Below are positions 16,611-63,500 of a stretch of 64,000 bases of DNA, in pieces. Each line of letters opens with the position of its first letter. Positions within the stretch are counted from its first letter, which is position 1. Source of the stretch: Magallana gigas (Eukaryota); NCBI RefSeq assembly GCF_963853765.1, contig NC_088859.1:12276001-12340000 (forward strand), written 5' to 3'. The position numbers and the translations under genes were made by a program. The notes beneath the pieces are model-generated. The model saw only the letters and a list, made by a program, of their open reading frames with translations, was not told the origin of the DNA and did no database searches.

Positions 16611-16980
16611 TTAATATAAAAGCAAGCTTCTAACTCAATCTTAATTGGAAATCAAAACTGTGCGGTCGCTTTCCTCCATTAATATTTCTTTCACAGCCTT
16701 TTATTATAATGAAACTTTAATAGACTTAAAAAAAAAAACCCAAAAAATCAAAATTAATTTTCAAATATTTGTATTCTCATAATATTAACAAACAACAATT
16801 GTATATATAAGTTGATTAATATGACAATTTTAAAAAACAATATATCATTCTCTCGAATAAATAACAACTTTCATTCAAAAAACACAACAACATTTCACAT
16901 AGTATATCTTTCATAGAAAGTACCGGTCTAAGTTCATAATACATTATGAGGTTTCATTATCATTAAGTTATTCTTCACAC

Positions 16981-18885
16981 TTAATCCATCTCCTCTACAG
17001 TCGGACCCTGACTAGAACTAGCTGGTCCTTGATTTCCCGTGGACCCGTTCTGGTGTAGTTTGGCCATGATGGGTGAACACACCTTCTGAACCTCCTTCAA
17101 TTTGAATTCATATTCGTCAACCTCTGCCAGGGCATTGTTGTCGAGCCAGGACACTGTTTCACTGCACACCCTGGATATTGTCTCTTTGTCTTCAGACTGA
17201 AGTTTGTCTCCTGTGTCCTCTGCCGCCTGTTTGACGGTGAAGACATAGGATTCTAACTGATTGCGGGCCGCTATCCTCTGACGCTGTTTATCGTCTTCCT
17301 CTTTGTATTTCTCGGCCTCGTTCACCATTCTCTCAATGTCGGCCTTACTCAGACGACCTTTGTCGTTGGTGATGGTGATTTTATTGGACTTTCCCGTGCT
17401 CTTGTCCTTGGCTGATACGTTTAAGATACCATTGGCGTCAATGTCAAACTCCACGTCAATCTGTGGGACACCTCGAGGGGCTGGAGGAATTCCATTCAGT
17501 TCAAAAGTACCTAATTTGTTATTGTCTTTTGTCATGGCTCGTTCACCTTCAAACACCTGAATGGATACACCGGGCTGGTTATCGGAGTATGTGGTGAAGG
17601 TCTGTGATGCTTTAGTAGGAATCTTGGCATTTCGTTCGACGATCTTTGTCATGACCCCTCCAGCAGTTTCAATGCCTAAAGACAGTGGAGTGACATCGAC
17701 CAGAAGAACGTCCTTGATGGCATCACTCTTATCTCCCTTCAAAATAGCCGCTTGGACAGCGGCACCGTAGGCCACAGCTTCGTCTGGGTTGATCGACTTG
17801 TTCAGTTCTTTTCCGCCCATGAAGTCTTGCAGCATTTTCTGGATCTTTGGAATTCTTGTGGAACCTCCAACCAAAACCACCTCGTGAATTTTAGATTTGT
17901 CCATTTTGGCGTCCCTCAGGGCTTTCTCTACAGGTTCTAAGGTTCCACGGAACAAATCTGCACACATTTCTTCAAATCTAGCCCGTGTGATTTTGCTGTA
18001 GAAGTCCATTCCCTCAAACAGCGAGTCGATCTCAATGTTGGCCTCAGAACTGCTGGACAGTGTTCTCTTGGCACGCTCGCAAGCTGTCCTGAGTCGTCTC
18101 AGTGAACGGTTATTTTTTGAAATGTCTTTATTGTACTTGCGCTTGAATTCCTGCACAAAGTGATTGACCATTCTGTTGTCGAAATCTTCACCTCCCAGGT
18201 GAGTATCCCCTGCAGTGGAGCGAACCTCAAATATGGAACCCTCATCAATGGTAAGGATGGACACGTCAAATGTACCACCTCCGAGGTCAAAGATGAGAAC
18301 GTTTTTCTCACCGGAAATGTTCTTATCTAGACCATAAGCCAGAGCAGCAGCTGTGGGTTCGTTTACTATCCTGAGAACATTGAGACCGGCTATCACTCCG
18401 GCGTCTTTAGTGGCCTCTCTCTGGGCGTTGTTGAAATAGGCAGGAACGGTGACGACTGCGTCTCGGACAGTTTGTCCCAAGTAGGCTTCTGCTGTCTCCT
18501 TCATTTTGGTCAGCACCATTGAGCTGATTTCTTCTGGGGTAAATCTCTTTTTCTCGTTCTTGAACTCCACTTCTAGCTTGGGCTTTCCTCCATCATTGAT
18601 TACCGTGAACGGCCAATGTTTCATGTCGGACTGTACACTGTCGTCGTTGAACTTGCGGCCTATCAGCCTCTTAGCGTCAAAGATTGTATTGTTTGCGTTC
18701 ATGGCTACCTGGTTTTTAGCTGCATCTCCTATCAGTCTCTCGGTGTCTGTGAACGCAACGTAACTGGGCGTCGTTCTGTTTCCTTGGTCGTTGGCGATGA
18801 TTTCTACTTTTCCATGTTGAAATACACCGACACAGGAAAACGTCGTTCCCAGGTCGATGCCGATGGCTGGAGCTTTACTTGCCAT
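16981..18885 (-). CDS. HSP70: Intronless cytosolic inducible-type HSP70, copy 1 (634 aa)
   Basis: Signatures [37 protein letters not shown]; C-terminal GPTVEEMD; single exon; TATA and HSEs upstream. Confidence 0.98.
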
Positions 18886-60556: not shown

Positions 60557-63500
60557 ATGTCTAATTTAATGTATAGATTAAATGGTTTTTGTACTTTCAA
60601 TGAAAGTGAGCAAGAGTTGCCAAAAGACATTTTGCAATATAACTGTGATATTTGATATTTATTAAATAAAATTTGTACATTTGTTGTTATATATTTTTCC
60701 ATACATTTATACTTTTGTTGAATGCTAATAAAAACTATATAAATGTTTTGGGTTTTTTTTTCTATGTTGTATGAAGTTTTGAGTTTATATATTAGAATTT
60801 AAAACTGAGATAGTGCTAGCATGTTAATAATTTTGTATATACCTGGTAAATTATTTTAAACAGCTCCAAAAGTTATTGAAATATATGAGAAAGTGTACTG
60901 TTCACATATATGGATAGAAAAAGTGATTTTGTTACAAGGGCAAGAACTCTATCAAAATGAGTCGCTTTTTTCTTTTGAATATCATTAATTTCACATAGAA
61001 TCTTGTACAATTCAATACCAATAGTATTTAAAACCCAACCATGCTTTTAGATAATTAGAGACCTCTAGCAGATTGTCTGAGTCCACCCATTGCAATGGGA
61101 CTGGGAACTGGGGAGTGAGAGACTCTATCTGCCTTGAAATTGGAGATGAGTACTGTCGTGTCTACTTTTGGGGATTAATTTATGTTAGGGGAACTTGCAT
61201 GCAGTGAGGGACCCTTAGGATTCCAGTCTCCGGTCCAAACGGTTTGGGATGACTGTTGAATATAAAACCAGGAAAGTTGAAAGAAAAATCATTGCAGATA
61301 TTATTTGAAAAAATATATGTCAGAAAGGACAGTACCGTCCTAGTGAATCTTACGTAACTAACAGGTTACATGTATATCACACTCTTAGTACAACCTTCAT
61401 TCCTTTTATTTAGTATTTGGGAATAAATTCTTGATAAAAATGAAATTATGTGCAGAATTTAAAGGTGCGAGTGGAGTTAAAGAGAAAAGTTTTTGAGTAT
61501 GGTTTTTTAATACAATTAAAATCAGATTGAGAATTTTTTTTAAACAATGATTGTGTAAATTTCCTTGTTATAGTAATATATGCCTCAAACCTAACATCAG
61601 AAACCCTGACGAAGGGGTCATGAACTCTATGATACTGGCAAAAGCCTAAGACCCAATTCATCGTTATGCTCTGAGTTTGCCTGCTCCCTATATCACCAGT
61701 ATCAGAGAATTAAGAGCCCTACCACCAAATTCTGAATCAGCATGTGGCAATAAATTTTACAATTTTGGTAGGGTGCCCATGCTTATCAGAACCATGTACT
61801 TAGTGTGTTTGCAATATTCTCAATAGCCGAGAAGACTTTAATTGGAAGAATTTATGCATTTTCACTATATTTTTGCATGACCAATAAAGCTCCACACAAC
61901 CTTAGGCCATGAACTTTACAATTTTGCACATGTACCGGTACTTAATTTTCTGCTTGATGCTAAAGAGTAAAAATTTGCATCAATTTTTTCCTAAAAATAT
62001 ATGGGCCTTTTCAGTGGGGATGGGGATCATGAATTTTAGAATTTATGTTCCTCTTTTCCTACAAATGTAATTTGGTCAAGATTGGGCAAGTATCATTAGC
62101 AATTAGTCAACTAAATGACTCAGATGACTTCAAAACCCAATTCACCAAATTATTTAATTTTTTCATCATTTTAAATACAGATAAAGAGAAATTTGATTTC
62201 TCTAGGATTGACATAAAGAACAAAACAATACTTAAACTGATCCATTCCTTTCATGTTTTAATAACACCAATATAAATGTACATGTGTAACAAAAAAAATG
62301 AGCAAAATAAAAAACAAATGTCTCATGTATTATATTTGGTAGGAACAACTTGCTATTACCCTAAATCATTAAAATTGTAAAATAGCACAGAATTTTAGTA
62401 ATGGAATGCCAATAAAAAATGAATTAGTTCAAAGACGTATATCATGTTTAACTTACTTGTATGACTTGATCAATCTGGAACAATGAATTTAGTATAAAGT
62501 GTGTTTACTTTCTTGAAACATGTTCATATAGAAGTAACAAAAAGAGAAAGGAATGAAAAAGTGGCCATTTTACACTATGAGTAAAGCCTTACAAGTTTTT
62601 AAGATAAAACATTGTTGAAGAGTTACCCAACATATAAAAAAGATGCAACCTTTAGAAAAAAGCCAAATTGTTAAAAAAAATTACATTACATTTTACTGAG
62701 ACACCATGAATATAACATATGCTAATGTTAATTAATAAGTAGGATTTGTAATTTCCATGCAATTTCAATTATTAGCTGACATTTACAAATCAAATTTAAA
62801 CAACAAGTACTTGTATATTTGAATTTGTTTGAGTCCCAACTTGTACACATATACAATGTATAATGAATGAACATGCATATTGTCCATGCAAATTTTATGA
62901 GTCTATTTAGATAAAATATAATCACATTGTTTTGTTTGTATCCATTTCATGAATCCCTTCATTATTAGACTAAATTTGCATTTTTCTTGTCTATGTGATT
63001 TTTAAATATCAATTTCTTAAAAAAATGCAATTATGTTTCTTCGTCTTTTTGGTCCATTGAGAATGTGACCAGATTTCTTGGCCATGTGTATATCACTAGT
63101 CTATTTAGACAACATTATGAAATTAAATGCTGCACGCCAATATCTATTTTATGTACATACATTGGGAATGTAATCAAGTTTCTTGTCCATGTACTTTTCA
63201 TGGGACTTTTCCAAAAAGTGCAATTCCATATTTTGTGTCCATGTCCCTTTTAGTTCAGATTTTGTCTGATACACAAAGTGCAACTCCGGCCAATACCAAC
63301 AGCATGCCTACATAAGTGTCTGCAAAATATCAAACATTGTTACATTAAACAGCTACCAAGTAGTCCTTAATTAATTTCAAAGATCCTGTATAATTACATA
63401 GATTTGTGCTTGTATTCAAAAACTTGAACAGAATCTAGTAGAAACAACAATGTAAATTGTTATGACTTCTTTCTTGTAAGTATCCAGAAATGGTATTGTA

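Follow-up and report, generated by a model that had tools for sequence, protein, structure and literature searches.

A conserved hairpin in the 3'UTR of oyster HSP70 genes as a candidate constitutive decay element

The 64,000-nt stretch of the Magallana gigas genome analyzed here (contig NC_088859.1 of assembly GCF_963853765.1, positions 12,276,001 to 12,340,000; hereafter the window) carries four HSP70 genes, and a short hairpin-forming element is conserved in the 3' untranslated region (3'UTR) of all four as well as behind related genes of other oysters. The best hypothesis, to which we assign a probability of roughly 0.4, is that the element is a hairpin of the constitutive decay element (CDE) type, through which a Roquin/Regnase-type pathway would degrade the HSP70 mRNA. 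It can provisionally be classed as a new candidate CDE. Such a role had been suggested by an earlier annotation made from the letters of the window (the sequence-only reading), whose author knew of no report of it; our full-text search of the literature on Roquin with oyster, Crassostrea, HSP70 or HSP70 mRNA likewise returned no mention of the element and no data on an oyster Roquin. Oysters are a model for thermal tolerance, and the inducible HSP70s are among their most strongly heat-induced genes. A 16-nt element frozen over four genera that also matches the strict CDE consensus would offer a testable candidate switch for the clearance of HSP70 mRNA.

Matches to the 13-nt core CTTTCNNNGAAAG are located at 16908-16920, 23407-23419, 54798-54810 and 60594-60606, precisely where the sequence-only reading had placed them, and nowhere else in the window. 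Shuffled sequences are expected to contain 0.15 matches in 64 kb, and 0 of 100 shuffles reached four. This count overstates independence, since the four copies go back to two inverted duplications; it is the comparison with other species that really speaks against chance. Written as mRNA, the site is GUACUUUC-UAU-GAAAG in copies 1-3 and GUACUUUC-AAU-GAAAG in copy 4. The element of copy 1 (16906-16923, minus strand) is composed of GUA, CUUUC-UAU-GAAAG and AU with a core of 5 bp, which could gain a U-A and a G.U pair through bulging of the A of GUA. Copy 2 (23404-23421, plus strand) has the same composition. In copy 3 (54796-54813, minus strand), UACUUUC-UAU-GAAAGUA gives 7 contiguous Watson-Crick pairs, and in copy 4 (60591-60608, plus strand), UACUUUC-AAU-GAAAGUG gives 7 pairs including a terminal U.G around the AAU loop. 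The contiguous stem thus has 5 bp in copies 1 and 2 and 7 bp in copies 3 and 4, and a triloop hairpin of the dimensions proposed earlier can be formed. The element is found 34-57 nt past the stop codon, with distances from the first base of this codon to the G of GUAC of 60, 60, 53 and 37 nt for copies 1-4, and all four sites are 5' of an AATAAA signal, i.e., in the predicted 3'UTR. A four-way alignment of the 3'UTRs confirmed that the element is the sole long invariant block common to pair 1 (copies 1 and 2) and pair 2 (copies 3 and 4).

Relatives were identified by protein search and their genomic or transcript DNA was retrieved, which gave 10 further instances outside the window: five in Crassostrea virginica, one in another Crassostrea, two in Ostrea edulis and two in Saccostrea. 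In C. virginica the element stands behind the stop codon of four genes and of one metagenome-derived allele, always with a UAU loop, and the same loop is present in the other Crassostrea-like transcript. The two O. edulis genes, which are 17 Mb apart, have a CAU loop, and both orthologues, from Saccostrea cucullata and S. echinata, have AAU. In all 14 instances the G of GUAC is positioned 37-88 nt from the first stop-codon base of an intact HSP70 open reading frame (ORF) of 634-636 aa. When the 14 instances were aligned over 40 columns, columns 14-28 (UACUUUC-N-AUGAAAG) were fixed save for loop position 1, i.e., 14 of 15 columns, the G before UACUUUC was kept in 13 of 14 instances, and the other 25 columns were all variable (Fisher p=6.5e-10 for motif invariance versus variable flanks). 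Among six representative lineages, pairwise identity was 0.96 for the motif, and for the flanks it was 0.38, close to the value of about 0.30 that base composition predicts. Conservation in related species had been set beforehand as the test on which the element could fall, and it was found to be kept in C. virginica, Ostrea and Saccostrea. On these alignments, we regard purifying selection on the element in the 3'UTR as established.

The element is absent from the Saccostrea paralogues of 632 and 633 aa, from a 657-aa HSP70 relative (85% identity), from Argopecten and from two Mytilus genes. Judged from the sequences compared, it is restricted to one clade of ostreid inducible HSP70 genes, and the original attribution to the inducible HSP70s of oysters in general was too broad. 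A covariance-model search of 264 kb (the window plus oyster, scallop and mussel loci) recovered the known sites and one decayed relic, with no divergent versions in paralogues, scallop or mussel, and an exact-pattern scan of metagenome contigs gave 120 random matches, none adjoining an HSP70 gene. The relic is located in C. virginica L016 at about 5325-5440 (minus strand), some 430 nt 3' of an intact gene. It consists of a relic HSP70 C-terminus (...VEEMD, stop) and, behind it, the hairpin motif enlarged by one inserted nucleotide (GAAAAG), which fits lost constraint in a dead copy. In the protein tree, the HSP70 coding sequences (CDSs) group by species, a pattern that indicates concerted evolution, and the motif-bearing group may have a single origin. 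The 3'UTRs of the paralogues represent old, mutually unalignable lineages even though the CDSs group by species, and concerted evolution therefore appears to be limited to promoter and CDS. Part of the 5'UTR of pair 1 is still alignable with Saccostrea. The 632-aa S. cucullata paralogue, which lacks the element, has a different 9-bp hairpin, UUUUCACUU-N15-AAGUGAAAA, at a similar place in its 3'UTR (L002, about 7100-7135, minus strand).

The consensus derived from the TNF CDE, as given in PMC6294493, comprises a pyrimidine-purine-pyrimidine (YRY) triloop, three apical Y-R pairs and a 3' purine stack; the sequence of CDE-37, for example, is UUUUC-CGU-GAAAA (PMC5303829). All features of this TNF-type consensus are present in CUUUC-YAU-GAAAG, which bears out the assignment of copies 1-3 by the sequence-only reading, and the UUC/GAA apical pairs are found in 14 of 14 copies. 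Leppek et al. in 2013 reportedly allowed 2-5 further unspecified pairs, giving stems of 5-8 bp in all. The strict consensus, taken as UUC-YRY-GAA extended by 2 bp or more, was searched on both strands of oyster DNA (434,676 strand-bases) and returned 10 matches, nine of which are the hairpins described here and one of which is background. From this single background match in 435 kb of strand sequence, the chance of a match is about 6e-4 per 250-nt UTR. Triloop hairpins of a relaxed type turned out to be common by chance when these AT-rich UTRs were scanned, so a relaxed match alone is meaningless and it is the combination of strict consensus and conservation that counts. Rfam gave nothing at gathering score in the whole window, and when the limit was relaxed to E<=10 for the copy 2 and copy 4 UTRs, nothing but noise came up.

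Comparison with known decay elements shows both similarities and differences. Like the oyster element, the TNF-alpha CDE is a 3'UTR hairpin with a Y-R-Y triloop, its apical U-A, U-A and C-G pairs are identical, and its 3' arm consists of purines only. On the other hand, the oyster element has mostly 5 contiguous pairs, its middle loop base is A instead of G, and its stem sequence and 5' GUA are frozen, whereas the ROQ domain of Roquin is said to read shape. Furthermore, its host is a mollusc, and the gene encodes a chaperone and not a cytokine. The tandem CDEs of UCP3, as described by Braun et al. 2018 (PMC6294493), resemble it in their YAU triloops with U at position 3, their cross-species conservation and a folding probability above 5%, but the oyster element is single. 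The Roquin alternative decay element (ADE), with a U-rich hexaloop on a 5-8-bp stem, does not fit, as the oyster loop has 3 nt in every copy. The stem-loops recognized by Regnase-1 (ZC3H12A), e.g., in the IL6 3'UTR, are also short, with a Py-Pu-Py loop and a position near the stop codon. Drosophila Roquin represses a TNF-CDE reporter, which argues for conservation of ROQ specificity in invertebrates, and natural invertebrate targets were unknown in 2017 (PMC5303829). According to the literature, rc3h1 is a single gene in invertebrates, metazoans share a conserved ROQ domain, and Drosophila Roquin recruits CCR4-NOT via CAF40.

The triloop, the feature that tells most about the element, is UAU in nine copies, CAU in two and AAU in three, and the variation is confined to position 1 (U, C or A), positions 2 and 3 being fixed as A and U. 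The AAU loops fall outside YRY, and for copy 4 the sequence-only reading had concluded that the loop is broken and that this paralogue escapes decay. However, in structured RNA Bind-n-Seq the human ROQ domain enriches YRU loops and, at high protein concentration, AAU (PMC11609897), so that UAU, CAU and AAU are all among the five loops enriched. For human Roquin-1, the AAU loop retains activity in reporters at a slightly lower level (Oberstrass et al. 2024, PMC11609897). The AAU-loop variant of that study, the sole non-YRU triloop enriched by human ROQ, has the same loop as copy 4 and both Saccostrea genes; whereas it was engineered into UCP3 in the human case, it is the natural state in both Saccostrea species examined. 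Because AAU is shared by these two species and is functional in the only system tested, the loop of copy 4 should not be called broken, and copy 4 would be attenuated at most. U is the strongly preferred base at the third loop position of conserved human CDEs (PMC6294493). Assuming that U is ancestral at position 1, this base has changed three times independently, once to C (Ostrea) and twice to A (Saccostrea, copy 4), and all of these changes stay within the accepted set, which includes three of the nine single-base neighbours of UAU. The probability of this by chance is about 0.04, which we take as a weak hint only.

A number of observations weigh against a CDE, most of them concerning the fold. 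All 14 copies have 3 nt enclosed by a perfect palindrome of 5 bp. The covariation analysis that had been proposed earlier confirmed that the stem is kept in 14 sequences, but no covarying pair was found in either of two stem registers, a result that does not speak for or against the fold. The five core pairs (C-G, U-A, U-A, U-A, C-G) are constant, and due to this invariance structural conservation is not separable from sequence conservation. The sole one-sided stem change, from G-C to G.U within the bulged extension, is not significant. Just 5 contiguous pairs are present in 11 of the 14 copies; the three with 7 are copy 3 and C. virginica L016(+), both fully Watson-Crick, and copy 4 with its terminal U.G. 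In human reporters a 5-bp stem already lowers repression, and only copy 3 and C. virginica L016(+) outright match the relaxed consensus of Braun et al. 2018 (6-8 bp, YRN loop, without G.U; PMC6294493). Ten of the 11 five-pair copies can gain a U-A pair with the A of GUA bulged, and nine of them then also a G-C or G.U pair, an extension that is not significant in flanks of about 73% A+U. The predicted stability is low, with minimum free energies of -2 to -5.3 kcal/mol and z-scores of 0 to -1.9. In favour of a CDE, the pair probability of the hairpin in a 220-nt context is 0.09-1.0 (median about 0.5-0.7 at 37 C), which exceeds the 5% cut-off of high-confidence human CDEs.

Sequence constraint outside the pairs is also hard to reconcile with recognition by Roquin alone. 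ROQ recognition is described as shape-specific (PMC6294493), and a pure shape model leaves unexplained why the unpaired 5' UA is frozen, with G before it in 13 of 14 copies. Together, the frozen arms and the unpaired 5' UA suggest a sequence-specific constraint beyond Roquin. In tables of predicted human CDEs, no HSPA gene is found among the matches listed, and the absence of the element from paralogues and from scallop and mussel HSP70 UTRs points to a lineage-specific addition and not to a general logic of HSP70 genes. Finally, ARE-like motifs (ARE, AU-rich element) occur about 55 nt 3' of the hairpin in all four UTRs, at 16856-16864 (minus strand), 54741-54749 (minus strand), 60656-60662 (plus strand) and 23463-23467 (plus strand). 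They are of the type UUAUUUAWW in copies 1 and 3, UAUUUAU in copy 4 and a single AUUUA in copy 2. AUUUA is also present in C. virginica, Ostrea and Saccostrea UTRs, and such motifs are common by chance in AT-rich sequence. These UAUUUAU-like motifs could carry the decay function instead of the hairpin, or contribute to it. ARE-mediated decay of Hsp70 mRNA in Drosophila and mammals likewise depends on 3'UTR determinants that would make inducible HSP70 mRNA short-lived; those are linear AU-rich motifs, whereas the oyster block is a palindrome with G/C closing pairs.

Three further ideas were considered and rejected. An RNA thermometer that melts at heat-shock temperature is not supported, since the median predicted pairing drops only from 0.86 at 10 C to 0.57 at 42 C, without a sharp switch. 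An extension in two registers, suggested by column 29 being always A or U, is expected at about 73% A+U and is not significant. A downstream ORF starting from the conserved AUG in N-AUG-AAAG was dismissed, as the lengths of the frame differ by copy and the frame of copy 2 ends after 4 codons.

If the element is of the CDE type, it would act, from a position roughly 40-100 nt inside the 3'UTR, as a cis-regulatory RNA hairpin in the heat-inducible HSP70 mRNAs (hsp68/HSP70 B2 type) of true oysters, with five Y-R pairs (CUUUC/GAAAG) capped by an N-A-U triloop and extendable to 6-7 pairs through the conserved 5' GUA. Its most likely reader would be a putative oyster Roquin orthologue with a ROQ domain, possibly together with a Regnase-type nuclease. 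Binding of Roquin would recruit CCR4-NOT and decapping factors, or lead to cleavage, and the HSP70 mRNA would be short-lived and be cleared in the recovery after stress. The UAU, CAU and AAU loop variants would set the strength of the effect. Beyond the conserved CDE-like element itself, we infer every one of these steps, including hairpin formation in the cell, which protein binds it and that the outcome is decay. A more far-reaching proposal, which we consider speculative and rather unlikely, is that the hairpin is a natural invertebrate target of Roquin/Regnase, that the CDE-ROQ pathway also times heat-shock shut-off, and that the loops (UAU > CAU > AAU) and the stems of 5 or 7 bp form a rheostat for the half-lives of paralogues and species. 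If true, this would be the first natural Roquin/Regnase target identified in an invertebrate, outside the vertebrates. Were the CDE hypothesis to be confirmed, the Roquin/CDE pathway, so far seen as an immune regulator, would become a general and deep-rooted means of shutting off stress responses. If the hypothesis is refuted, the element would still rank among the most clearly selected 3'UTR motifs of a mollusc and would suggest that a new reader exists.

Such a different reader is a possible, though doubtful, explanation: the element could be bound by another sequence-specific RNA-binding protein, as hairpin or as single strand, that controls translation, localisation or stability, with the likeness to a CDE being coincidental. 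Neither arm nor the unpaired 5' (G)UA varies in sequence, no compensatory change is seen across four genera, the hairpin is weak, and the element is restricted to one ostreid gene clade, all of which speaks for such a protein. What argues for Roquin instead is that the strict CDE consensus is rarely met by chance, as the scan showed, and that the loop variation stays exactly inside the ROQ-accepted loops. Moreover, no alternative protein could be named: the histone stem-loop, the iron-responsive element and the Roquin ADE loops misfit, Rfam offered nothing, and the CNGG(N0-3) loop of the Smaug recognition element does not match loops of UAU, CAU and AAU. An action at the DNA level, as a palindromic STAT site of the gamma-activated (GAS) type, TTCN3GAA, downstream of the CDS, appears improbable. 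TTC-NAT-GAA does fit this core, and a palindrome would be equally conserved under a DNA or an RNA model, with no covariation to separate the two. Yet the conservation is asymmetric, with a fixed 5' GTA and variable 3' counterparts, and it extends well past the 9-bp GAS core. A symmetric dimer site also does not predict that spacer position 1 alone varies and positions 2 and 3 never do, and every copy is in a 3'UTR predicted to be transcribed, 37-88 nt from the stop. The 6-base core is itself common by chance, its YRY subset having 9 matches in the window versus 6.6 expected. A heat-shock element (HSF site) was rejected because the spacer has 3 nt and not 2 and only two units are present versus at least three needed.

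A microRNA (miRNA) target site would explain an invariant 8-mer, GUACUUUC, that resembles a seed match in a 3'UTR, and the K-box-like CUGUGAUA elsewhere in some of these UTRs suggests regulation by miRNAs. We nevertheless consider this very improbable, as both arms are kept over 15 nt, beyond the 7-8 nt that a seed needs, and no matching conserved miRNA could be named. The seeds of miR-71 and miR-252 would each be one base off the element. The K-box-like motif is present in several HSP70 3'UTRs that have otherwise no relation to each other, at 54754-54761 (minus strand) and 60643-60650 (plus strand) and in the UTRs of the L017 (plus-strand) and L002 (minus-strand) genes. We take it to be a seed match of the miR-2 family, and with 3 matches in the window versus 2.5 expected its frequency is not above chance. 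Finally, the motif could have no function and be conserved by chance or by hitch-hiking with gene conversion of the CDS, an explanation that we find barely credible. The 99% identical arms of pair 1, which run from the promoter through the CDS and end 4-5 nt past the hairpin, would allow it. However, the 99% tract of pair 2 already stops 17 nt past the stop codon, and the 37-88 nt from stop to motif are unalignable between UTR lineages while the motif itself is identical, so gene conversion cannot explain the identity of the motif.

The four HSP70 genes are arranged as two head-to-head pairs. Copy 1 (16981-18885, minus strand, hsp68/HSP70 B2 type), copy 2 (21442-23346, plus strand), copy 3 (54864-56768, minus strand) and copy 4 (58652-60556, plus strand) each have an intact ORF of 634 aa. 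The closest database proteins, named heat shock protein 68-like or HSP70 B2, are from Crassostrea (Magallana) angulata and gigas, with 99-100% identity. The genes are of the intron-less type that databases name after inducible HSP70s, and they are presumably heat-induced. Each pair has inverted-repeat arms of 99% identity, located at 16903-19045 and 21282-23424 for pair 1 and at 54847-57056 and 58364-60573 for pair 2. The AATAAA poly(A) signals are found at 16700-16705 (minus strand) for copy 1, which puts its hairpin within the 3'UTR, at 23543-23548 (plus strand) for copy 2, at 54672-54677 (minus strand) for copy 3 and at 60727-60732 (plus strand) for copy 4, the last being preceded by an earlier AATAAA at 60665-60670.

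The shared HSP70 promoters (19060-19120 and 21100-21270) contain pairs of HSF half-sites of the TTCTAGAA type and a TATA box (TATATAAGG), and no perfect three-unit heat-shock element was found in the whole 64-kb window. Between the two HSP70 pairs, an ORF at 41067-41927 (minus strand) encodes a reverse-transcriptase domain (RVT_1, E=1.6e-11) and represents a retroelement fragment. Long ORFs without a Pfam match are present at 11102-12808, 30422-32041, 10352-11002 and 29206-30258, all on the minus strand. The longest two (11102-12808 and 30422-32041) are mutually unrelated, and the N-terminus of the Pfam-less ORF of 539 aa is cysteine-rich with a B-box-like pattern.

A second conserved block, YAUACAWWU, was observed in the 3'UTRs of the four window genes at 16797-16805 (minus strand), 23516-23524 (plus strand), 54695-54703 (minus strand) and 60700-60708 (plus strand). 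In copies 2-4 it precedes AATAAA by 18-25 nt, and in copy 1 by about 90 nt. The block is missing in C. virginica but recurs in Ostrea and Saccostrea UTRs (L001, L002, L003, L004 and L013), including those of hairpin-less paralogues, and it may be an upstream polyadenylation element.

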